A model generated the notes under the pieces. The model ran no database searches. It saw only the letters and a program-made list of their open reading frames with translations, and was not told the DNA's origin. A stretch of DNA of 62,940 nucleotides, filler included, from Hyphochytrium catenoides (lineage: Eukaryota > Protista > Hyphochytriomycota): NCBI GenBank assembly GCA_900088475.1. It is 8 parts of 8 records of this genome, joined end to end, with 100 filler letters (N's around TTAATTAATTAA, not from the genome) between each part and the next. Parts side by side here need not be neighbours in the genome. Positions count along the whole stretch, not along the records: positions 1 to 16,487 come from FLMG01000161.1; 7 more parts are not named here. One strand, given 5' to 3'. A program made the position numbers and the translations under genes. This document shows positions 1 through 16,531 of the stretch, piece by piece. The number at the start of each line of letters is the position of its first letter. Positions within the stretch are counted from its first letter, which is position 1.

Positions 1-305
1 TCTCTCTCTCTCTTTTTCCCGAAGAGCTCATCTACTCATTTATCAATGATGGCCTCACGTCGGCGCCTCTCTGCCGTGGAAGGGTCCCAAAAGCACGCTT
101 TGTTTGAGCTTTCACTTCTTGTCCTGTCTTTCCTCGCTGTTCGGTGAGGTTCTTTGGAGCTGGAGCCAAGCCGTTGACAGGAACTTGAACAGCTGTTTCT
201 GAAATAGAGGTTTCTGAAGAAGCATCATTCAACCAATTCCTGGCCCAGACGGAAGCTCTCTTCCATTTAGCGCCGTGCCGAGACACTCATCTATCGCAAG
301 GAATC

Positions 306-1111
306 ATGAGCCTTACCGCCGTGCAACTAGACAAACGAGCTCTTCAGGCCACAGCAGCTGCCTCGGCACTGTTGGTCCTGAAGATGTACATCACCCTCTC
401 CCTCCAGGTACTACTGCTCCTCCTCCTTTCTCAGTGTCCCTGCTGTCAGCTAAGCTACCCCACTTGGAGGTTGAGCTGTTCTTCGTTAAATCAAGCCTAC
501 GATAGATTATAATGCTGACTGAGTCCGTAGGGAGCTGCTCGGATCCAAGCTGGCTCCCGGCCTCCGGAAGACCAGAAGCTCTTCCCAAAAGCAGGCAACC
601 AGGTATATGTCTAAGCTACAACTCTACCTGACTCCAGGTACCTCGCCACTCGTATCCTATGTGCAAACTAACACATACCACGATACATGCAGAGTTTTGA
701 TGGCTCAAGAAAGTTTGCTGGCAAGGAAGATGATCCCAAGGCCAAGTACCTCAAAGAGAAGGAGTGCCGTTGGCTGCGTATCGTCCTTAACGACCTTGAG
801 AACATCCCAATGGGGTTGGCTGTCGCCTGGGGAGGCCTGCTAACACCTTACAATGCTGATGCCCATACGGCTATGGTTCTCGCTTTCGCCATTGGCAGGT
901 GTGTGGCAATTCGAGTGATGTGCCTCGCTTTTTAAGTTGTGGACTGACATGTTTGGCCAAACTGTCTTTGGCATCTCTTAACAGAGTTCTCCACACATTT
1001 TCCTACGCTTATGGCCTTCAGCCCCACAGAGGCATCTTTTGGTTCGTCGGAGTCGTGAGTGTCGTTGGCATTGCAGCTAATAGTCTGGCTGGTGCTCTTC
1101 TCCTGGCTTAA
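306..1111 (+). CDS. MAPEG family protein (microsomal glutathione S-transferase / PGES-like), 4 exons
   Basis: Exons 306-407, 531-602, 693-898 and 985-1111 join in frame at GT..AG. The product has MAPEG motifs 'GSRPPED', 'RWLRIVLNDLENIP', 'GRVLHTFSY..GLQPHR' and four hydrophobic helices. Confidence 0.9.
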
Positions 1112-1857
1112 CGCTGGCGATAACTGTGACATTTTTGGGCGGCCGCTTCTGAAGCCTATCCGTGAGTTCACGAACCCACTGGACATTGCTATTGCTATTC
1201 TATTATCTTGAGCTAGTGTCCGTCGCAAGGGGGATGTCTATTACATCCCGTAGTGTAGTTGAACCGTAGGCTGACTTTGTTACGTTGAGCGTATGAGCAT
1301 CCTACCGTCAATAACCTACCTTTTAGAATACAAGAGGCTTCTCAACCTAATTAGACTGCATGGCCCAGAGGGTTGGGTTTGTGGCGCTCATTTGTGGGTA
1401 GCAGTGCTTCCAAAGCATTTGACATTATTGTTGTGATGTAGCTCTATAAGTACTCTCTTGGCTCGTACCACTGCGCTTTCAGTTTGACATGGGCGGAGTT
1501 CGCTTGGCATGGCATGATGACGTTACCATGTCAGCGTTGTCCCGACTTAGAATTAGAACTTCGAAGCCGTTCTTTGCAAGAGAGAGGAAGTAAGTTTTGA
1601 TAACTCAGCCCTAGACATTGAATGCTTGCCCGTGCCTACGGCTTTAAGATGACAAACGATTGCATACTTCGGTGGAACAACTATTGGATCTTTTATTATA
1701 GACTCTCCAACATTATTATATGCATGCTGTTAACCTTCACATGTGGGTCTCAGGATGTGAGAGACGTACACATCGGTCAGCAGTGGCTCGATAGTAGGCA
1801 GGAAGGTAAAGTATATCATTGACTGCCGAAGGACAATCTGCAACTCTCGAAAAAGGA

Positions 1858-2586
1858 CTATAGCAGTCGATCCTCATATGTAATCAATATTGCTGATAGT
1901 CCGAACAGTAACAAGTTGTATGTCTGATTAATCAATAGCAGCTTGCCGGACTTGCCCTCCCAGAAGTAATGCAGAAGGTCGCTTGCCAGTGTTAAGCCCG
2001 TAACCATTGCCGCACAAGTCAAGGATGATTGAACCGAGCCATCAGCAGTGCGTTGGATAGACTGCCAGCAAAGCAAAGACGGGTACATAGCATGAGATGC
2101 AGGGTTAATGGAAATGTTCAAGGAAGAGAGAGAGATAAAGACACTACGCCAGCAGGATAATAAGGGGGAAACTGACCCAAGGAGTAAGGGAGAACATTGA
2201 GTGAGACGCAAGAATCACTGTGACGGAAAATGAGTAAGAACAACTGAAAGGGACAAAGAGTATCTGCAAGAACTCTTTAGAGATGTGAAACTCTATTCCT
2301 GCACAGGACTTACCCAATAGAGTAGAGCATTGCCAATCCATGAGCCCGCGATACTGCCCATCATAGCTTTCTGCATGTCTACCGTAGGCTTCGCAAGGCC
2401 TTGCTTCTCTACTTCAGCTGTTTCCAACACAAGGCAAGAGCAACTCAGAAAATTAGGTCATGATGGACATTCGTACGCGATCTCACCTTGCCAGGTATTG
2501 CCGAACAGCGGCCCGTAGTAAAAGTAACCCAGCGGCTGAGTTGCAAGGGTAGTGAGAGAGACAATAAGTCCTGAGCGGAGCGACAT
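1858..2586 (-). CDS. DUF1761-like small multi-pass membrane protein, spliced
   Basis: Exon 1 reads MSLRSGLIVSLTTLATQPLGYFYYGPLFGNTWQ (donor GTGAG) and exon 2 AEVEKQGLAKPTVDMQKAMMGSIAGSWIGNALLYW (donor GTAAGT). The last exon ends 'HYFWEGKSGKLLLINQTYNLL'. These match the DUF1761 pattern 'W/Y-Y-G-P-L-F-G-x-x-W ... F-E-x-x-x-x-x-L-x-x-I-N-x-x-Y'. Internal exon boundaries are uncertain. Confidence 0.7.
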
Positions 2587-3895
2587 TGTTCTGTTGAATT
2601 GTCCTTTAGAGCTTGACGAGGGTAATGTATCTGCCGGTGTAATGTCGTTGTAATCTGAAGCTTTGATGGGATGTTTGCGGTCGAAGGTAGATTGGATTAT
2701 GCCATGCAACGGAAGATCTTTTATTATGTTGAGCCGCTCAGAACTTTGAAGTGCTATTTCACTGTTTACCTACCTTCCTTCTCTCTCTCTCCTCTCACTC
2801 TCTCCCTTTTTCATCTCCCACTAGGCACGCTCTAGCTTTAGCACTCTTCTGGCCTGCCTCGTTCTTCTCTCGTCATTTCATCTCTCTTTCTCTCCCCGCT
2901 TCTTCAGGCACGGGTGTATTTGTACCACATCTGCCCTCAACAGCACCCCCACATCAACCTTTGTCTTTCTCTAGTGGGGCAACGAGGAAAGAAGGCTGTA
3001 CAAGGGCAAGGTGCCCGTAACAACAAACACCTCAAATCCCATCTCATCTTCTTGAACCTCGTCTCCCTTCCTCATTCTTTCCTTGCCTCTTCTCATCAAA
3101 GAACAGCTTCCCACCAAGCCGCATTCTTCTCAAAGATCTCTGTCCTCACAGATCGGGACATAAGATCCCTGCGTTCCCTCCCCCGCCCTTTGCTCACTTC
3201 GGCGAACACTGCTCCCTACACATAGTGGGTAACGGCTTTAGGACTGTCTGAATAACCATAATCTGATTCCTTTGTTGATTTCTATAATCGCTGTAGATGT
3301 GATCTGCCGATTGATTCTCAGAACTCCGATTCTCATGATCTGTTCTGTAGGGCTTTTTACCCACTTGGACATAACCCGAATTGGAGCTTCTTGGCAGGTA
3401 CTTGTAAGAGAGAGAAGAAGACAGGAAAGTAAAAAGGAGGGGGAACACTGTCAATTACGGCGTATTTATAAAAAGGACTATGGCCTATTCCGTCCAGCTC
3501 TACATTCGGGCTCTTGGCCACGTCTATTTCGGCCCTATCCATATAGTTTCGGGGTTTTCTTCAAGTAATCAAGCCTGTTGTGGACTATCAATCAATATAT
3601 TGCCAAAGAAGAAAAGTGCAGCTGAAGCTTCTTCAATGGCAAACCTGAGCTGGCTTGCTGAGGAGATTCGTCTGCAATCTGCAGATCTGAAGACATGAAG
3701 GGAAGATTAAGAGGCATTCCGTAGGTCGAGGCGTGTTCTTCACTTTCTTGGAGCCACCCTCTTTTAAGGTTCAACAACGCGATAGTGTCCTCCTGCGGTC
3801 CTGCAGTAGAGGTATCTTCATAACCTTGCGACGCACGATTGGGGAGAGTAAGGTCAAAAGGCTCACTGGAGAGATAGCCGAGACAGCAAAAAAAC

Positions 3896-5856
3896 ATGGC
3901 TTCTCCCGTCGCTCATACGATGCCCACGGCTCCCACCATCTCAGAGATTTTTGCGCTGAGGAAGAGAGACGTACTCTTTCTTCTTGGATCCACGTCTCTC
4001 CTGCCAGGCTCCTGGTGGCTCTGGCATGGAATGACCGAATTGCTGAAGGAATATGAGCAGCAAGCAGAATCCGCAAAACTAGACAAAGAAGGACGCCTTC
4101 CTCAGCTTGCGGATCTCTCCATTGCCTTTGCCGCTGCAGTGCTTATGTGCCTTGTTCGGAAGTTGGTTGCCAAACCGTTTCAGGTATTCAATGGTCAGGG
4201 CAGCTAAGAGAGCCGATCTTCCACTTCCAATCGCCATATTTGCTGTTATCCTCTTTGCGCCTTCTTGCCCATCGGTCTGGTGTCGAAGTCCTTTTGCGTT
4301 AGCTACCCTTAGTCATTTGATGTATGATCGCTTCTTAATGCATCGTCTTTGGATCCCCATTGCAGGCCTTGGGAAGCAGGGTGCTGTCAGAGAAGAAGAA
4401 AATGGACCAAGAGCGCTTGGAACGCTTCGGCTCTGTGGTCTTCAAACTTCTGTACGTCTCAGATCAAGCTCTGGATCTGTCTTTCTCAGAACAAATTCTG
4501 GATCACTCTTTTTGCTGCGGCACTTGGTTTCTTCTAGGCTCAATCCCTGTGTGGTGTTATTATGCTTATGTCCTTCTAGCCACCTCACACTCTTTCTGGG
4601 TCGAGGTACACATCCTTGACTCTCCCTTCTTTCTTACTCACTATGGCGCTTCTCTACCCTATTTCTCTCTCTGCTCGTCTCTCTTTTACACTCCTTCACA
4701 TGGCCTGCCCCTCAAGTCGCCACTATCAAGTGAGCCTACGAGCAGTGTCGTCTCCTCACCTTGGCTAACTCTGCGCTTTTCTCTATGCAGNNNNNNNNNN
4801 NNNNNNNNNNNNNNNNNNNNNNNNNNNNNNNNNNNNNNNNNNNNNNNNNNNNNNNNNNNNNNNNNNTATCTCATACAGCTAGGCTATCATCTTCACAGCA
4901 TTCTGTATATGGTCTTCGTCTCGCCGCACAGAAGTGACTTTGCAGAGATGAGCTTCCACCATCTCTGCACTGTGCTGCTGATCTCCTGCTCCTACCTAGC
5001 CAATTATCTGAGGGTCGGCACTCTCGTAGTGTTTGTCCATGACGCCAGTGACCTAGTTGGATGTAAGGCTACTGGTCGTCCTCGCTGCGGCTCTTGTCCT
5101 AGATCTTCGCTCATCACTCTTACCTGTCTTTCTTGGAAGCTCCGATCACAGGTCCTCTATGGCTTCATTAGTTCTCCTCAAACTGCAACTATACAGACTC
5201 TGTTATATCAGCTACTGATTTCTCTGGCAATGGAGATCTTAAGTGCTCCTTTCAGTCTCTCCAGTCCTTCCTTACTTGCTTTGCTTAAGCCTTCATACCT
5301 CTCGCCATTAGGGCTTCTGTTTCTGACGAAGTCTGATTTCTCTTTCCTACAGATGCAGTGAAGAGCGTGGTGGACACCCCACATACCTACCTCACTTTCT
5401 CTCTCTACCTTGTCCTCTTGGTCACCTGGGGCTATCTTCGACTGTTCGTGCTCCCTGTACACATTCTCTACTGCACGTGGGTGGAGGGAGAAGGTGTCGT
5501 GCCGGAGGTGATCAGGAAAGGGATGAACCCCCTTCTGGTCTTTCTCGTCGGACTCCACTTCTACTGGTAAGAGAGGAAGCGTACTCCTCTCTCCATCCTT
5601 TACACTCTCTTTCATGCCCTCTCACCTCCCGTGCAAAGTATTCTTCCATATCCCATCTCTTGTCTCTGGCACTCTTTCTGCCTAGGACAGTATCCTTATG
5701 CTAAGGGCTTTACCTCTCTATTCGGTATGTGTCAGGTTTGGTCTATTTCTAATGATGGGCTATAAGTTCTTGAATACGGGGAAGACCGAGGATATTCAAG
5801 ACAAGAAGAGAGCAGCGGCCATAGAGCTGAGAGACAAGGACAAGAAGGACAAGTAG
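3896..5856 (+). CDS. Ceramide synthase (Lag1/TLC domain), spliced, spans an N gap
   Basis: Lag1 motif 'RSDFAEMSFHHLCTVLLISCSY..NYLRVGTLVVFVHDASD', plus 'RFGSVVFK', 'WGYLRLFVLP', 'LVGLHFYW' and 'GKTEDIQ'. Lys-rich C-terminus (KDKKDK*) ends at TAG 5854-5856. Confidence 0.92.
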
Positions 5857-6978
5857 CAGCCCTGTACAGGGCTACCTGTTGAGTGTCCTATCATAATATC
5901 GTTAATGTGGGTTTCGTTATAACATTTGAGGAAGACGAGCGCGAGGGAGAAAGTGGACGAGGATCGATGGGCCCACGCTATCCTTATGTGCTCTTCCTTA
6001 ATGCGATCTTTCTATCAGCTCTGTTGACCTCTCTCTCTCTTCTCTCTCTCCTTGGTATTTATTCTGCCTCCAGTGACTATTGAGAGTCAGCCCTACGAAG
6101 CAACAGTCTAAACTATAATGTCAGATGTAACATTAGTCTGAACCTTTGCTCTTCTTGCTCATCTTGTCTGTTCCTTGCTTGCCCTAGAGCTATAGAGGCT
6201 CTGACGATACACTTTCCACTTCTCGTTCTCACCATTCTTCAGGGTTCTTATATAATGCGGCTGTGTATCAGCTCCCCTCTTCACTACTCTTTTCGTTGCC
6301 CTTCCCAAGTCCATCAGTCACACTTTATAATCCGCTTCCGTCTAGTACTTGCTCCCTTTATTTCTCTCCCTTTAGTCTTTCCCTGTTCCTTTCGACTCTT
6401 CCTCTGGAGAATGTCCTATCATGTCAATCTGTGCATTAAATGTTTGCTGGTTGATGGGTCATTAGACCGCAACTATTGAATGATAGTAAGACGTAGAATA
6501 AATAAGCAAACAGAGGGCTGAGCTGCTCTTAGGAGTGGGGCCACGAGGGTAATGTGGCTTGTCTTGTCGTCTTCTCTTTCTCTCTGCTGTCAACCTCCGT
6601 TTACAAAGGATTAGTGGTTGAGGATGTCTTCCTTGTTCCTCCTGACGTCTGGGGCCGTTGTCTAGCGACGGGCTTAGTGATGTCCACTCCCCTGCCAGGA
6701 CACGAAGGTCAGAAGAAAGCAAAGAGAACTCTGACAGGTGGGAACAGTAATAACAAAGCGATCAGCGAACGAAGTCACTGAGGAAAGGGGAAGACCATAG
6801 TCCCAGAGCCTTAGTATGAAACAATTGCTTCGACAGAGCTTCTGGCTTACGTCATCTTCGCTCTCCAGCCTCCTGACGCTTCGTCTATCTCCATGTACCG
6901 CAAGAGACCTTCTAACTGTGACTCCTGGATTGAAAAGAGAGCCACCTTAGTAAGGTACATGCTTCTTCTCCCGACTAA

Positions 6979-8694
6979 CTAAGACAAGGCGGTTTTCCAC
7001 TCTTCCCTATCCTCTTTCTTCGAACGAGAGATCCGCCCTCGCGAGCGGCCTCTTCTTCCCCGCTCTTCCCAGCTCTCTACCATGTAGAGGAGTACGTTTA
7101 CTTCTGCAACCCTCTCCTATTACGGATTGCCTGTCTTGTTCCTCCTCCTGCTCACTAGCCATTGTTGCTTCACTTTTTGCTCTCTCTTTACTTCCGATGA
7201 GTTACCTGCGTGCAGTACTTTCCCTCTAACCGGTGCTGCTCTTGTCCGAATGCCTCTTCCGCTACTCTAACCAGGAACTCTAAGAACATAGCGAAGCCTC
7301 TCTCTGCTCCTCGAAGAGCTGACCACTCAGGTAGAAAGGACGCAGTAGAGGACGGAGGAGAGGTAGGAAGAGGAGCGGAGGCAAGGGCAGGAGAAGAGGA
7401 AGCCGGAGAGGGGAAGGGTGATGCCGTAGAGAAAGCTGGGGAAACAGAACCGCGCCGAAGTGCGGACTGGTAGATTGACGATAGCTGAGAAGCGCAGGAA
7501 GGGGAGGGCCAGGGATCATATGGAGACAGAGGTGGAGAGAGATATGAATGTGGGAGACGGGATTGGAACAGGAAGTCAATGTCAGTGAGCCAACAACTCT
7601 GAGGGTTCTTCTGCGGCGAGAGAACAAGTGTGGAAACATGCTAAGAAAGAAGAAGTAAATTTAGATGTTCCTGCTCTCTCCAGTTCACATTCCATTCCAT
7701 TGACCTACCGTTTGCTTGGCAATGAGTTTAGGTGAAAGATCAAAGTCTGCAGCCATTTTAGCGGTCTCTGGAAGCCTCAATAGCTCTTGTCCACCCGCCA
7801 GCCCATCAAATGTGGGCGCGGCAGTCTGTGAGCTTTGCAGACGTCGGTAGAAGTTGAAGATCTGACGCCACGAGGAGGAAAGGCAATTAGAAAACCAGCG
7901 TCTAACGAGGACAGAGTCAAATAGGACGACCACAGTGAGACGATTGACATGCGCACTAGCAGACGTTATGAAGTGAGATAGAGGTCAGGGTCCTGATGCT
8001 CTTGACAACCACGATAGTATAATGCCAGCGAAGAGAAGTAGGCGATGGCCACAAAGAGACATCGAAAAGCTGATAGAGAGAGTTCAGACGGTATTGCAGG
8101 GCTCTTGGCGCCTGTCACCTGGTGCAATGGGCGCTTGTATTTCTTGTTAAGCAGCAGCGACTGGGTCTGCAGAGAAAGAGAGAACTCGCTAGACTTCTTC
8201 GTGGCTAATGAGGGCATATGCCATACAGGGAGCACAGAACACTTATCAGCAAAAGTTACGCCCGAGTCACTGCGCGAAGGAGGAGAGCGGGCTTCACTTC
8301 TCTCCTTCTTGGCTCTCTGCAGCTCCTCTCAGTTCTTCATCTTTCCTCTTTCAAAGCCCTCTCACTCACTTGCATGTCTCCCAACAGCGTCTGTCTCTAA
8401 CTCCCTGTCTCCTTACGAAACCTCTAGCATCATGTCAGTTGCGTGTACCTTGGAGGTCGTAGCCAAGTTTCTTGGGAGTCCTCTTGCTTGCCATGGCAGC
8501 CCTGCCCTCATCGTCTCCCAAGCCTTCAATCCCTGCTCTTGATATCTGGCGCCATGCTGCAAGCAACGGAGGAAAGAGAGTGCGTGTCTCAGTTAATTTA
8601 TTCCTCGTCAAGCTTTAGTCTAACCTACTTTGCCAACTTCCAAAACCTAGTTCGATGCTCTCTCTCTCATCTCCCTCTCTCTTCTTTCTCTCTA

Positions 8695-8759
<65 letters not shown>

Positions 8760-11700
8760 GTCTCGCTCGTTCTCTTCTTCTCTAACTCTCTCTGTCATAT
8801 TAACATTCGGAATACATCTTCTGTCGCCCAATCTCTCCCTTTCTCATCTCACTTTCTCTCCCTCCTCTCTCGTTTTTGACAGACAGGCATTTCAACTTCT
8901 TTCCCTCCGCTCTCTCCGTTCTTTATATCCAAGGGATTAGAGTCTCTGTACCTGCTGTGTCTGTCACCTTCATAACCTCAAGAAGAAAAGAAGCTATCTT
9001 GTCTACGGCTGTTTGGACCTTCTTGCCTCCTTCCGCTACTGCTTTTCCCTCTCTCGCTGCAGCTGCAGGACCAGAAGAGAGAGAGGCAGAGGTGCTTCCA
9101 CCTGATTCTCCTTTCGGTCTCTGCGGCAGACCTCCAGCGACGAGGGCAAAGCACCCCAGAAGGTCGACGAACCCTCGATAGGAGACTTGGACTGGCACAA
9201 GTTCAGGCGGAAGGGTAGAAGAGAGAGAAAGAGAAGGGATAGAAGAGGAAGAGGGGACTGGCTGGGCGATGTAGAACTTATCGTGCTCTGTGTGTCCCTT
9301 GGCAAAGAGAATAGTCCTGCTCTCTGCAGATCCTTCTCCATCCGCCTTAAGAGCAATGCGACAGATATCTAAAATCTCTTCCTCTTTCAGAAGCGCTGGG
9401 ATGACGGAGAGATCTCTGAGCAGCTGGACGAGAGAGGCCAAAGACATCTTTGGTGCGAGTGCGCCCTGACTCGCTGCAAGCAAACCAAGATTGGGGAAGA
9501 GGAAGAAAGGGAGCGGGAGGAAGCGAAGGCAATGAGGATGTCACTATAGCCAGGGAGAAAGAGGCAAGAAGCGGAGACAGTCCGAGTAGGTCGAGATAAG
9601 CACAGAAAAGTGAAGTAGGGCAGAAAGCCTTCAATATTGCAGAAACATCAAAAACAGAAGCCGCAGGTAAAAAAATTGCCCAGAAAGAGGGAGGAGAGAA
9701 AGAGGGGGAAGTAAGAGGGGTGGAGATGGGAGAGAGAGAGAGAGACAAAAGGAGAGTAGTGCTTCACCTGTCGAGAGGAAAGTGTCCATCTTGACAACCT
9801 CTTTTCCGACTGTCACCATTCCTCCCTTCATCTGAGAAACAAAGAGAGCCTTATGACTGATGTTTGGATTCTTTCGTCTCTTTGCCCTCCCGCTGTTCTT
9901 TGTAGTCACGGGTCGCATCTTGTACAGCTCTCTCGTTCTCCTCTCTCTTTCTCTCCCCCTCTTTCTCCCTTTCTCTTTCTCTCTTTCTTTACCTCTCTCT
10001 CTCTCTCTGTCTCTATCCCTCTGTCTGTCTGTCTCACTCTTCGCTTCCATAGTAATGACCCTACTGTTCTTGGTCGAGTTGAACAATCTCTGGCTCTCTT
10101 TTCTCTCGCTTTCTCATTTCCTCTTGCTCAATCACTCGCTTCTATCTCCTTCGTCTTCTTGAGACTGTCTCCCCTTACGCTCTCAAGCTTGTCTCTCTAG
10201 CCAACTGGCCAAAAGCTTATTATCCAGCACTCACCATCCGCGCCCCGAAGGCTTTGGTGTCAGCATAGTGAGAGAACAGTTCGTAGAGAGCAGGAGCAAG
10301 CTCCTCTGCTTGAGGGAGAGCGGAAAGTGGAACACCGCCTTCTTCGTATAGAGGATCCTGCACGCACATCAAGGACTGGAATACTGCCAGCTGTCCAGAG
10401 AAAAGGGGAAAAGAGCAAGGGAGCAAGGGAGAGAGGGAGACAGTGGTGAGAGAGAGAACAAAAAGCCGTCATGAGAGCTGCACCTTCAAATGAATGGCTT
10501 TGCAAACCAAACCTCAAAGTTTGAAGAAGCCCATCTTACCCGTGCCTTCTCCTTCTCCTTGACCTGCTTTCGAGCTTTGGAATTCGTGCGCTTACCATCA
10601 TTACTAGCTCTGTAGAGAAGGAAAGAGAGTAAGGTGACCTTTGTCCTGAAGGTAAAGACAGGTATTACGGACTGAGAATAAGACAGAGAAAGCAATGTCG
10701 TGACTATAACGCGGTCAGCGGAAGGAGAGGTCCCGAAGAGCATAACTTAAACTCATTGAACTGAACAAGTAAAGAGCTTGCAGGGTTATGGAGCTTACAT
10801 TGCGATGCCATTGCCGTTGTTGGCGGCTCCTGCTACTGCGAAGTGGGAATGTGAAGGTGGGGAAGAGAGGCGAAGGGTGTGAGAGAACAGTCATTTAGTG
10901 GTGAGACGGAGAGACAGGCAGAAGAATGAACAGCTGACAGTCTGAGCTAGCTGGACCTCGGCGTGAAATGAAGAAAAGTCACAGGAAATCTTGCATATGC
11001 CCTCAGCCAGGCAGAAGTGTAGACCGATAGTATGGAGATGCTGAGAGGGAGATACGGAGGTGGACAAGATACCGAGGCAACGACAGGTGCAGCGGCCAGA
11101 AACAAGGAACCACAGACGGAGATAGAGTGAAAGAAGGAGGGAATAGAGGAAACTTTGACCCTGAAGAGAGGCACAGAGAGGGACAGGAGTGGAACCGATC
11201 GCGAAAGAGGTTACGAGCACGGAGAGAGAGAGTTTGACTCTATGGATGACATGAGAAGAGCGAGAGCGAGAGCGAGAAAGAGAATGGGAAAGAGAGAGAG
11301 AGCGAGAGAGAAAGAGAGAGAGAGAGAATAAAGGAGAGGAAGGGAGACTCACCCACTGCTCCTTTCGACTCCAGTTCCTTGATAACCTCACGGAGCTGTT
11401 GCATCAACATTGCGATGCGATGTAACGAGTGAGGAGAGAGACTAGCTACCCTAAAATGCAGGGCAGACAGGATGTCAGAGATCTACAAGGAACTATTATT
11501 GGCCAGGTGCAGCACCTAGCTTAAGAGAGAAAAGACTAACAGGGACGGGGAGGAGAGACTGTGTAAGACAAGCTAGGAGACAAGGGCGAGACACATAGAG
11601 AAGGCCGATCCAGAGACATGAGAGGAAGAGCCGAACCATTAGGTATGAAGAGATGTACAGCTAAAAGAGTAGAAGCAAACAATAGACATGGCGTCAAGAA

Positions 11701-14100
11701 AGAGGAAGAAGAGTAGCAGAGATAGAAGTTGCGCTCTGAGGAAGATTGGCTAGACAGAATCTTAAATTAAACCCTGAGATCCCGGAGAGATAGAGAGCAG
11801 ATAATAGGGAGACAACAACGCAAGAGAATGAAGGAACACACAGATAGAGAATGAGTCTTCTAGGGAGAGGCGAGAGCGAGACGACTCACTTTTCGTACGC
11901 AGCTTCATATTCAGTGGTGGCCAGGGTCAAGGCTCTCGTCATGTCTCCCAAGAGATGGAAGAGCGCATGAGAGTAGAGAAAAGCAATCTGCAATCGAAGC
12001 TCTAGGTAGAAAGAAGTAGAGATATGAGAGAGAGATGCCACTAGAGCGCGCATAAGATAACAGAGATAGGGCCAGAAACAAAGGAGCTTTAGCTAGATAA
12101 AAGATTAATCGGAGAGAGAGAGAGAGAGAAGGAGAGGAGGAGAGTAAGAGGAAGCGGGACACGAAGCAAATCGGGAGAAAGACAAGCAAAATGATAACGT
12201 TTCCCTGCTAACCCCAAACCCGGTTGAAGAGAGGCAGTTATACGTCTCCTTGAATTAGAAGAAAGAAAGGGAAGAGACACGCCTACCGTTGGTGGGTTCA
12301 AGATGCTCTCTCGCCAGTATAACTGCCTGCTCAAAGACGGAAGCTATCTCCCGCTTCAATCTGGTGCTTCGCACAGCCTCTTCCTCTCCTTCCTTCTCTC
12401 TCTCCTCTGACTGCACTTCCTCTCCTCTAGGATTTGCCTGGACGTTGGCTGTCTCCTTATCTTGTCTTCCATTCAAAGAACGTCTTTCTCTCTCTTTCTT
12501 CAGCTTTAGAGCTTCTAGTTGGTTAACATACTGCTGGGCCAGCCTGATAAGGAAGAGAGCGGGAAAAGAAAAGAGAAGAAAAGAGAGAGACAATACAGTG
12601 AGAGGAAGAGAGAGATGGAGAAGAGAGAGATGTCATCGAGAAAAAGACAATGAGGGGGAGAGAAAGAGGTGGAGAGAGAGAGAGAGATCTTCACTTATGA
12701 TAATGATAAGCAATAAACGTGGTTGGGATAGAAGGATATGAGAGGGAGAGAGGATACAGAGAGAGAAGGAAGGCAAAAGACAGGTCTTGCCGAAGGAGTA
12801 CAGACTGGATGGACTGACATCATAAGGTAGAGACACCGCGCTTCCGGAGGGAAGGTAGAGAGAGAACCCTCTACGTCCTGCTCGTCTTTCTCTCTTCGAT
12901 TCAATGGATGAGAGAGGGAGACAGAGGTGGTCGTCCCAGAAGCGTCCAGGGACACAACTGCCGCTGGCTCCAAAGGAGGCAGAGAGGATGGAGAAGGAGT
13001 GTCGACTGGAGAGAGAGGAGAAGACGAGGAAGGGACAAAGCCTCGAGAGTTCTTTGCCAGTCTATGTCGCAGAACAGAAGCTATTTCATCGCAGATCTCC
13101 TCATAGTCCTGCCGAAGCTGCTGCAGCCTGGCGCTCCCGTCACTAAAGAGAAATGACAGAAAACGTCAAAGGGTATTTCTGAAGAATGAGAGGACCAAGA
13201 GAGAGAAAAGAGAGAGAGAGACATGCACACACACGCAGAGAGACAGGGGCAGAGAGCGAGATAACGTGACAGCGTGGGGTTAAAACGAAGAGGAAGAGGG
13301 AGAGATAGGACAAGGAAGAGGGAGAGACCCAGAGAAAGGCGAGTGGAGGCAGAAGATGTCAGAGAAAAGGATGTTGCAGAATTTGTCAGGGAGTGGAGAC
13401 GGAGAGGAGAAGCAGAGGACGACCTTAGAAGAGGGAAGAGTAGGAGAAGATGGGTAGAAGAACCCAAAGAGAGAGACGGAGAAGAGAGAAAGTGAGAGAC
13501 GGAGAGAGGAAGAGAGAGAGAGAGATGGAAGAAGTGAGAAAGAAGCGGAAGATCATTCGTCAGCTGACCTCATCCTGTTAGCTATTGCTGAGGACAATGG
13601 TGGTCTTCTTTCAATCTCCAGACCTGTGGGTTCCTCTCCTTCTCTCCACAGCCACTGCGCAGCATCGTCTTCATTCTCCCTTTGTCAGAGCATGGGCCAC
13701 GCGGTCTTTCGACGTCCGGAGAAGAGGAAGGATGTAGGCTGAGGAGGACGGGGAACGGAAGAGAGAGAGACAGAAAGAGAGAGAGAGAGAGGAACGAAGA
13801 GAGAGATGGAAGCAGCAGCAAAGAGAGAGGACAAGAACAAAAGCGAGAAGACAGAACCACGAATCCCCAGACCAGCAAAAGACAGAGAAGGGAAGAACGA
13901 GCGGGACGGACACAGACCACTTAGGACAATCAAACGCTAAGGGAGAGCAAACGAAAAAGACAGGGCGGATTCCGCTGAGCACAGGAGCTGGGACGAAGAG
14001 AGACCTTTGGAGACTAAAACAGACCGAGCGGGCCAGCCAGCTGAGAGATAAAGACGACAGGAAGAAAGAAAGAGAGGAATGAAGAGAGAGTGCGAGCGAG
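6979..14100 (-). CDS. Large multi-exon hypothetical protein with degenerate EF-hand-like helical repeats; 5' end uncertain
   Basis: Coding-like exons separated by microsatellite-rich introns: 'LYELFSHYAD', 'MSLASLVQLLRDLSVIPALLKEEEILDICR..VSYRGFVDLLGCFALVA', 'WRQIFNFY..KMAADFDLSPKLIAKQT', 'FAMFLEFLVRVAEEAF'. Probable last exon ends 'WKTALS*' at 6979. Exon structure is only partly resolved. Confidence 0.45.
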
Positions 14101-14681
14101 AGAGAGGAGGCGCGCAGAACAAGGAGAGCGAGACTTCAGCAGGAGGACTATTGACAGACGAACGCCTTAGAAAAGAACAGACATAGAAGATAGAAGACAT
14201 GAGCTCCAGAGAAGAGCGCCGGGAAGGAAACACAGCGAGAAAGCATGAGACGTCGAAAGGACGATAGAGCGAGACAGTGAGGGGAGAGAGAGTGACAGAG
14301 AGAAGAGAGAGAGAGAGGGAGAGAGAGAGAGAAGAGCGAGAGAGAGAGAGAGAAAGAGAGAGAGAGAAGAGCGAGCGAGCGAGAGAGTGAGCCGATGAGG
14401 AAGAGGAAGCATGAGAGTCTACCTGGGTGAGGCCAGTAACGGATGAACTCAAAGGAGACTCAAACTTGCTAACAACCTTTATTGAAAGGAACATGAAAGA
14501 TACATCATTCATCTTATATGGCTAGCTCTAATTGTATACTTTCAGGTTCAGAGGAATGAAAGATTCAAAAATAGTACAATAGTTTACAGCTAGTCACATC
14601 GAACAACAAACGATCACGGGTTGGCAGTATATGAAATCTCTCTCTCAACCAGTAGACTCTCTTTGTCAACGTGCATCACAC

Positions 14682-14718
14682 TCTCTCTTTCTCTCACTCT
14701 CTCTTTCTCTCTCTCTTT

Positions 14719-14764
<46 letters not shown>

Positions 14765-15005
14765 CTCTCTCTTCTCTCTCTCGCTCTCGCTCTTCTCTCT
14801 TTCTTTTCCTCTCTCTTTCTTTCTCTCTCTCTCTTTCTCTTTCTCTTTCTTCCTCTCTCTCTCTTTCTCTTTCTTTCTCTCTCTCTCTCTCTCTCCCTCT
14901 TTTCTTGGTCTCTCTCCCTCTCTGTTCTCTCTCAGGTCTCTCTCTGTCTCTCTCCCTCTTGGTCATCACTATTCTCCCTCTGGTTGGGTTCTCTCTCTCT
15001 CTCTA
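14682..15005. repeat. (CT)n/(AG)n microsatellite-like tract
   Basis: About 320 bp of almost pure C/T. It is representative of many such tracts in 8.6-17.7 kb, 43-48.5 kb, 51.4-53.4 kb and 61-62.9 kb. Confidence 0.95.
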
Positions 15006-15273
15006 GCATCGCGTCCCGCATTGCGTCTCTGCGGTCCATCTTCGTCTGTTCGCCATCATCGGCAGTGAAGCCTTCAGTCAGAGATCAAGACATACAGAGA
15101 CAGATTGTCTCGAGGTACACAGAAAGTTAGTCATTGCGCTCCAGATAGCAAGCCAGAGGAGGAAGAGAGAGAAGGGATCAGGGAAAGGAGGAATACATTT
15201 CAGCAGCGCCGCGCTCTTCCTTGGCACGTTGGCCACTTCCTGTCTGTCCTTCTCCTTTCTCTCCTAACAAAAG

Positions 15274-16430
15274 ATGCTACAGCTTCTCTCTTCCGCGCAC
15301 TCTTGCGCCCTGAGAGGGAAGAGAGCCCTCTCTCGCTCCCCGTCTGTCTCCCGTTTTCTCTCTATGAAGACGATCACTATCGATGAGAAGGCAATGCAGG
15401 TGCTGCTCAAAGATTTCAAGGCCTCTGAGAACTTTGACCTCGTCGTTATTGGATCTGGACCCGCGGCGCAAAAATGCGCGATAGACAGCGCGAAGAGAGG
15501 TGATTGTCTTCTTCCTCTTCTTGGTCTAGGCTCAGTCTCTGGCAGCAGCTTCTCTTAAATATTCCTCGTTGGGAGATGGACTGTTTGCTTTGGTCTCTGC
15601 CTTTGTCTTCCTTTTCATTCAATCCATTCCTTGCTCAGTAATGTTCCTTCCTTTCCTTCCTTTCTCTGTTTGTCTGGCTGTCTTCTTTCTCTGTATCGTC
15701 GCGTTAAGCCTGAGCACTGTCGTCCCGCGGTTTATCTATTACTTTTTTGCCGCGCATCTCATGCTCTACCTCGTGCTCCTAGCGGTCCCAGTCTTCTAGA
15801 CTTCCATCGCTTCTATGGCTGAAGAGCTCTCTCTCGCTCTTTATTGGCCTTCGCTCTTCTTTGACAGCATCTGCCGATATCTCCGCATCTTAGCACCTCC
15901 TTCGCTTTCTGCATATTAGTCTTTCCCTTGCGGGACTTCTTCACAAGTTTTGTCTCTTCCTTACCAGGACATGCCTCACATCCTCCCGCTTTCTTTTCTC
16001 TCTCTCTCTCTCTCTTTTGCTTCTTTCTCTCTTTCTTTCTCTTGCTTTGTTTAGGCAAAAAGGTTGCAGTGGTGGACAAGCGCGCTCTGCAGGGCGGCGT
16101 ATGTGTGCACACAGGCACGATACCAAGCAAGACCTTCAGAGAGGCGATCATCCATCTCACTGGCTATAGACACAAGGGATTCTATGGAAATTCTGCGCAG
16201 GTAAGAATCAAGAAAGAAAGAGAGAGAGACAGTGAGAGTTTGGGAGAAAGAGAGACGTCACGGGCGCCGTGCAGAGCTCTTACAGTCCACCCATCTCTCG
16301 CCTCTCCTCCTTTTCTCTGTTTCTCTCACATCTTTCAGCCCCTTCGCCGGATTGGTGTGTCTGACATCTTGGACAGAGTGAAGAAGGTCGAGCACGTGGA
16401 GACTGATATTGTGAGGGACCAGCTACTCAG
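15274..16430 (+). CDS. sthA: Soluble pyridine nucleotide transhydrogenase (SthA/UdhA type), 5' part with putative mitochondrial presequence; truncated by contig end
   Basis: Exons 15274-15499, 16055-16200 and 16339-16430 splice in frame. The product has the FAD Rossmann motif 'FDLVVIGSGPAAQKCA' and 'GGVCVHTGTIPSKTFREA' (CxxxxT instead of the CxxxxC of lipoamide dehydrogenase/glutathione reductase), followed by 'LTGYRHKGFYG'. Confidence 0.85.
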
Positions 16431-16531
16431 GTCAGTTTAGCATGCCGGAACTCTCGCTCCTCCCTGTTCTGCTCTCTCTCTCTCTCTNNNNNNNNNNNNN
16501 NNNNNNNNNNNNNNNNNNNNNNNNNNNNNNN

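Follow-up and report, generated by a model that had tools for sequence, protein, structure and literature searches.

Soluble transhydrogenases of the SthA type are usually regarded as bacterial enzymes, and the exchange of reducing equivalents between NADPH and NADH in mitochondria is usually attributed to the membrane protein NNT. NNT/PntAB likewise passes hydride between NAD(H) and NADP(H), the same net reaction, and does so in the compartment presumed for the enzyme described here, but it belongs to an unrelated family, is membrane-bound and is coupled to the proton gradient. Here we describe a gene in a 62,940 nt window of joined sequence from Hyphochytrium catenoides (assembly GCA_900088475.1); all coordinates refer to the whole joined stretch. 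The gene lies on the piece at positions 1-16487 (FLMG01000161.1), where its visible part (15274-16430, plus strand) consists of three exons of approximately 150 codons and represents the 5′ end only, as the piece ends at 16487 within intron 3 and about nine-tenths of the coding sequence lies beyond it. It is almost certainly a spliced gene of the SthA family, and the reading that we favour, as reasonably likely, is that it forms the 5′ end of a nuclear gene for a mitochondrial SthA/UdhA-type flavin adenine dinucleotide (FAD) transhydrogenase (EC 1.6.1.1).

Like E. coli SthA/UdhA, the gene encodes an FAD-binding Rossmann motif and a single-cysteine C-x4-T motif that replaces the disulfide of related enzymes, and its orthologues share the FNYPT.AE motif; bacterial SthA differs from it in having no N-terminal leader, no linker and no introns. 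The nearest relatives found are a long paralogue of oomycetes (for example P0257 of Pythium insidiosum, P0271 of Phytophthora rubi and P0278 of Saprolegnia parasitica), with identities to the gene of 56-80% over exon 1 counted from Met31, 53-79% over exon 2 and 57-74% over exon 3; some of them are listed in UniProt under the name 'NAD(P)(+) transhydrogenase (Si-specific)'. These proteins have the same layout of a basic leader, a '..L..LKASEHFDL' linker and the Rossmann fold, but the oomycete open reading frames (ORFs) run on where the gene has introns, and its DNA is rich in CT/AG tracts.

Homology searches were carried out with the exons one by one and with a natural stop-free stretch of 125 aa (16057-16431). 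Exon 2 alone matched the NCBIfam equivalog model for Si-specific NAD(P)+ transhydrogenase (NF003585) at 50 bits (E 1.8e-13), a score obtained from a single exon with about one tenth of the protein in the window, to be read beside a whole-protein cut-off of 465 bits; the next-best family, lipoamide dehydrogenase, reached 22.8 bits. Exon 1 matched positions 3-27 of NF003585, and the FAD Rossmann motif GSGPAA was found at residues 60-65. The best match among solved structures was the soluble pyridine nucleotide transhydrogenase 9n4y, an SthA structure from a bacterium other than E. coli. With the 16057-16431 stretch, 1054 proteins were recovered at E<=0.001 among 1.84 billion (best E 1.7e-21), and this homology match is far beyond chance.

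The gene could in principle encode dihydrolipoamide dehydrogenase (E3) or another disulfide reductase paralogue, as these share the superfamily fold, and weak matches were obtained to the lipoamide dehydrogenase family (the 22.8 bits given above) and to E3 chains in the PDB. The SthA model, however, scored 27 bits higher on 45 residues, and a column comparison with Lpd, Gor and SthA taken from the annotated E. coli K-12 record showed that CVHTGT lines up position by position with CTHWGT of SthA, as against CLNVGC of Lpd and CVNVGC of Gor. The gene has the SthA pattern GGxC.H.GT.PSK at the site where Lpd and Gor have C-x4-C, and because Thr replaces the second redox Cys no redox-active disulfide can form. 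Although the C-terminus of the gene product itself is encoded beyond the end of the piece, its closest full-length orthologues carry FNYPTLAE there (compare FNYPTMAE in E. coli SthA and HAHPTLHE in Lpd), with the catalytic His changed to Tyr in the FNYPT.AE motif. Together with a tree that sets the gene apart from Lpd and Gor (see below), these observations make an E3-type identity scarcely credible and effectively excluded. The assignment to SthA-type and not LpdA-type flavoproteins, first made in a preliminary description of this DNA from the sequence alone, was thus upheld by the NF003585 score, the 9n4y match, the C-x4-T motif and the phylogeny.

The exon-intron model (Table 1) was confirmed by alignment, the splicing being read from sequence and homology. 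At the junction of exons 1 and 2, AKRG/KKVAVVDK corresponds to KHGKKVAIVDK in a continuous homologue, and at the junction of exons 2 and 3, GFYGNSAQ/PLRRIGVSDILDRVKKVE corresponds to GFYGNSYSFASGKSVSLEDILDRVKKVE in P0001; the joins are likewise matched by colinear proteins of Pythium, Phytophthora and others, and because these homologues run continuously across the junctions both joins are confirmed. Introns 1 and 2 have GT-AG boundaries, and all three exons are open with canonical splice sites. Downstream of CVHTGT, the translation of exon 2 continues as IPSKTFREAIIHLTGYRHKGFYG; this stretch, the CVHTGT motif and the 30-residue N-terminus, all quoted in the preliminary description, were found in the translation. 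That description had the CxxxxT signature and the TFREA..FYG segment split by GT-AG introns: the introns are there, but the motif lies wholly within exon 2, and what they flank is this exon, with the motif and the TFREA..FYG segment that follows.

Intron 2 is a multiple of three in length and stop-free, and was considered as a coding insert. This possibility was rejected, as the segment has no counterpart in the homologues and shows GT-AG boundaries and a pyrimidine tract. The better-scoring homologues, full-length ones included, match 16057-16431 as two stretches that correspond to exon 2 and exon 3. If retained, intron 2 would add 46 low-complexity residues to the protein without truncating it.

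Table 1. Coordinates of the transhydrogenase gene and of other features on piece 1-16487 (exon/intron boundaries marked by a slash, intron bases in lower case).
Feature	Position	Strand	Details
Exon 1	15274-15499	+	ATG 15274; donor AGAG/gtgatt, phase 1; from sequence and translation
Exon 1 contents	15274-15363; 15364; 15451-15468	+	Leader residues 1-30; second Met, followed by conserved linker; GSGPAA; from alignment with homologues
Intron 1	15500-16054	+	555 nt, gtgatt...tttag; CT tract at 15992-16047
Exon 2	16055-16200	+	Acceptor tttag/GC, donor CAG/gtaaga; carries GGVCVHTGTIPSKTFREA
Active-site motif CVHTGT	16102-16119	+	Single Cys/Thr; inside exon 2
Intron 2	16201-16338	+	138 nt, gtaaga...ttcag
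Exon 3	16339-16430	+	Acceptor ttcag/CCC, donor CAG/gtcagt, phase 2; PLRRIGVSDILDRVKKVEHVETDIVRDQLL-R; 57-75% identity to colinear homologues
Start of intron 3	16431-16487	+	gtcagt...; piece ends here
Pyrimidine tract, CTAAC and AAAAG abutting the ATG	15240-15273	+	Resembles branch point and 3′ splice acceptor
Long CT-rich low-complexity tract	14681-14982		Tandem Repeats Finder, period 2, 142 copies; just upstream of the gene, in a putative promoter or 5′ untranslated region
Imperfect CT/AG dinucleotide-like tracts	8658-8793, 9928-10040, 11253-11327, 13467-13552, 13760-13806, 14266-14391, 14681-14959, 15992-16047		Tract 14681-14959 (280 nt) lies just upstream of the gene; tract 15992-16047 is at the 3′ end of intron 1
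Spliced TLC-domain gene (LAG1/ceramide-synthase-like)	3896-5570	+	PF03798, E 2.6e-16
Exon-like ORFs of the TLC-domain gene	3896-~4190, ~4400-4470, 4870-5060, 5358-5570	+	ORF scan; PF03798 in 4870-5060
Coding-looking ORF of 186 aa	8923-9483	-	A single weak homologue in a search of 5.8 billion proteins

We also considered whether the gene might be a bacterial contaminant of the assembly. This was rejected on account of the introns, the CT tracts common to the gene and the rest of the piece, and a neighbouring spliced TLC-domain gene. Besides the one in intron 1, the 16-kb piece has CT/AG tracts in seven further places; because they are shared in this way, and because the spliced TLC-domain gene stands on the same piece, the gene is part of a eukaryotic chromosome. 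The earlier argument for a spliced nuclear gene, which had relied on GT-AG introns containing the CT/AG tracts of the host, therefore stands and gains the tracts across the piece and the spliced neighbour. The scattered tracts are a compositional signature of the host genome.

The locus might also be a pseudogene or gene fragment, either limited to these 5′ exons or broken in its downstream part. Nothing is visible past 16487, and the full-length protein of the gene itself was absent from both protein collections searched, where the best entries had 57-83% identity per exon; an unannotated draft genome would account for this absence, and the piece does contain a run of N. A look-up of exact products with the exon 1 ORF, aimed at the 3′ exons or a longer contig, gave no match, and a metagenome scan with exon 2 returned distant loci only, mostly of soil-bacterial type (best 75%). 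Against decay, the three exons are open with canonical splice sites and the invariant residues are intact (D55, G60, G62 and P63 in exon 1; GG, HTGT and PSKTFRE in exon 2). We therefore regard a pseudogene or fragment as quite improbable, and an SthA-type enzyme encoded here would probably be active as a transhydrogenase.

Residues 1-30 of the translation (MLQLLSSAHSCALRGKRALSRSPSVSRFLS) contain four Arg, one Lys and eight Ser, and no Asp or Glu; the description of this segment as Arg/Ser-rich without acidic residues was accurate (five basic, none acidic). There is no hydrophobic core of the kind found in signal peptides (top 8-residue Kyte-Doolittle mean 1.25), and an R-x-[FL]-[FL]-S pattern (SRFLS, residues 26-30) was spotted by eye only. 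From Met31 onwards the sequence aligns with the oomycete proteins, through the linker (..LLKDFKASENFDL compared with ..LRELKASEHFDL) and into the Rossmann motif. The oomycete homologues have basic leaders of their own, 25-45 residues long and most beginning with 'ML', and first-exon ORFs of other eukaryote genomes likewise showed Arg-rich leaders. The start of the GxGP motif falls at residue 60 in the gene, at a median of residue 52 (range 32-108) in 23 named eukaryotes and at a median of residue 13 in the bacterial rows; bacterial SthA begins approximately 5-10 residues before the Rossmann motif, and the N-terminal extension amounts to about 50 residues. The mitochondrial-like presequence proposed at the outset is thus matched by a real extension relative to the bacterial proteins. 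We infer from its composition and from the shared layout that residues 1-30 would form a cleavable mitochondrial presequence, import being a well-motivated prediction, and a mitochondrial location appears somewhat more probable than not.

The position of the start codon bears directly on this point. If translation of the same SthA-type gene began at the second Met (15364), the product would be a cytosolic enzyme, and use of both starts would give a dual-localised one. Met31 sits exactly at the onset of similarity to the oomycete proteins, and some database homologues have short N-termini (P0125, P0277 and P0286, with GxGP at residue 16-17), but such short entries may be truncated models, and a basic leader of comparable length, opening with 'ML', is retained in almost every named homologue from eukaryotes. 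An in-frame TAA (15265-15267) lies two codons upstream of ATG 15274, which no other ATG precedes for at least 284 nt (there is none in 14990-15273) and which has the better context, with A at position -3 compared with C at ATG 15364. Because it is both the first ATG and the one in better context, scanning ribosomes should use ATG 15274 if it is transcribed. Translation from ATG 15274 is accordingly the start that the sequence predicts, and initiation at Met31 is unlikely, albeit an alternative of some weight. The signals that abut ATG 15274 (Table 1) raise the possibility of an intron in the 5′ untranslated region that would end at 15273.

The leader could also direct an SthA-type enzyme to a plastid or another compartment instead of the mitochondrion, as Ser-rich basic leaders resemble transit peptides too. 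Targeting to a complex plastid, however, requires a signal-peptide-like core, which is missing from this leader (the mean of 1.25 noted above), and the same kind of leader is present in plastid-less oomycetes and holozoans. We consider such a destination improbable.

The premise that SthA is found in prokaryotes only, on which the preliminary description was built, was not borne out: homologues that share this layout occur widely in eukaryotes and have already been named by automatic annotation, many as 'NAD(P)(+) transhydrogenase (Si-specific)' or 'soluble pyridine nucleotide transhydrogenase' in UniProt and NCBI. Oomycetes have two paralogues each (Pythium, Phytophthora, Saprolegnia, Aphanomyces, Bremia, Peronospora and others), a long one of approximately 545-580 aa (P0271-P0284) and a short one of approximately 503-531 aa (P0292-P0313), which both carry basic N-terminal leaders and do not group together in trees. 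Homologues were also found in brown algae (Ectocarpus, Ascophyllum, Undaria and Hapterophycus), in Spongospora (Rhizaria), in the red alga Porphyridium, in Rhodelphis and in the holozoan protists Corallochytrium, Chromosphaera (Nk52), Amoebidium and Syssomonas (P0007), as well as in many unnamed transcript-like contigs. A Nannochloropsis protein named as a Si-specific transhydrogenase has been detected in a proteome table (PMC7554720). Among the named matches there were no relatives from animals, plants or fungi, a result that comes without a dedicated test of absence, and none from apicomplexans. The gene is thus an unannotated member of a eukaryotic SthA family that is named in databases and experimentally neglected, and the family is eukaryote-wide but patchily distributed.

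To place the gene we used a careful IQ-TREE tree of 44 rows (LG+C20+F+G4, posterior mean site frequency (PMSF) approach). Besides the gene stretch 16057-16431 and an outgroup of E. coli Lpd and Gor, it contained 23 named eukaryotes, an unnamed MMETSP transcript, 14 named SthA proteins of bacteria taken from a genome scan, the SthA protein of E. coli and two more bacterial rows. The split between SthA and the outgroup proteins Lpd and Gor had support of 91/98, and the gene, over 79 columns, fell on the SthA side and not with the dihydrolipoamide dehydrogenases. It was sister to the long oomycete paralogue (paralogue A) with support of 95/91, and the eukaryote rows formed one clade (93/90). Their sister was a bacterial clade (97/93) of Acidobacteriota (Terriglobia and Thermoanaerobaculia), Gemmatimonadota, Deferrimicrobia and Binatus type; the pair of eukaryotes and Acidobacteriota/Gemmatimonadota-type bacteria was supported at 94/96, and E. 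coli SthA fell outside it. In a quick tree of 73 rows that included unnamed environmental sequences, the bacterial group nested among eukaryote-like rows, so that there may have been one transfer or several, and in either direction.

Both motif patterns were present in at least 590 bacterial genomes of the genome scan. Those encoding the SthA proteins nearest to the eukaryotic ones were almost all metagenome-assembled genomes of Acidobacteriota/Gemmatimonadota, not Proteobacteria: the best 80 of the at least 590 (L006-L085) belong almost all to these phyla and have approximately 50-53% identity to the eukaryotic proteins, full length. Their SthA (for example L007 of Thermoanaerobaculia and L015 of Gemmatirosa) shares the GGVC[VI]HTGTIPSKT motif and forms the sister clade, but has no leader and carries GxGP near residue 13. 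A lineage of this type is a plausible donor.

These relationships also bear on the idea that the gene was acquired by the host itself, in a recent transfer from bacteria followed by gain of the introns and the leader. The family is of bacterial type, and its nearest non-eukaryotic members are the Acidobacteriota/Gemmatimonadota proteins at the identities just given; the closest relatives of the exons, however, are eukaryotic (57-83% identity per exon), the gene groups with oomycete paralogue A within the eukaryote clade, and the leader-linker layout is common to those eukaryotes. A private acquisition does not fit, because the nearest relatives are eukaryotic, and a recent host-specific transfer is very improbable and effectively excluded. 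Of the horizontal acquisition first proposed, the bacterial-type ancestry therefore survives and the restriction to this host does not. On the trees the ancestry appears real but old, and common to other protists, and any transfer would have been ancient and not specific to the host.

Under the reading that we favour, a mitochondrial SthA/UdhA-type transhydrogenase, the protein would be imported into the mitochondrion and cleaved near residue 30, leaving the mature enzyme in the matrix. FAD would there relay hydride between NADPH and NAD+, uncoupled from the proton gradient, so that matrix NADPH could be drained or balanced against NADH in the way that E. coli SthA does; these catalytic steps are taken from established SthA/UdhA biochemistry. 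Several points weigh against this reading. Only about one tenth of the protein is visible, the NAD(P)H and C-terminal interface domains are encoded outside the piece, and an inactive or broken gene is for that reason still conceivable; 79 aligned columns underlie the placement in the tree; 15% of shuffled sequences reached the maximum hydrophobic moment of the leader over 11 residues (0.68); and full-text literature searches yielded no biochemically characterised eukaryotic member and, the Nannochloropsis table entry aside, no study of a eukaryotic SthA.

A broader proposal, which we put forward tentatively and hold to be somewhat short of an even chance, is that the gene belongs to an overlooked family of mitochondrial, soluble, energy-independent SthA enzymes in many protists (oomycetes, brown algae, eustigmatophytes, Rhizaria, red algae, Rhodelphis and unicellular holozoans). 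A single ancient transfer out of an Acidobacteriota/Gemmatimonadota-like lineage would have given rise to the family, which would be absent from animals, fungi and plants and would act as an uncoupled matrix NADPH/NADH valve beside or instead of NNT. The basic leaders on the gene and on its protist relatives suggest that some eukaryotes may run an uncoupled organellar flavoprotein transhydrogenase, which, if true, would change how matrix redox balance in such eukaryotes should be modelled; were the host parasitic and animals without the enzyme, it could merit consideration as a selective target. The gain from this locus itself is modest, as it adds one unannotated member to a named family and corrects the idea of a private transfer.

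Elsewhere on the piece, an assembly gap (a run of N at approximately 4790-4870) lies inside the TLC-domain gene, and no tRNA genes were found in a search of the sequence. For the ORF at 8923-9483 on the minus strand, an Atlas feature search gave a vague indication of eukaryote clusters, including a few that are p25-alpha-like, and this ORF may be a lineage-specific gene.

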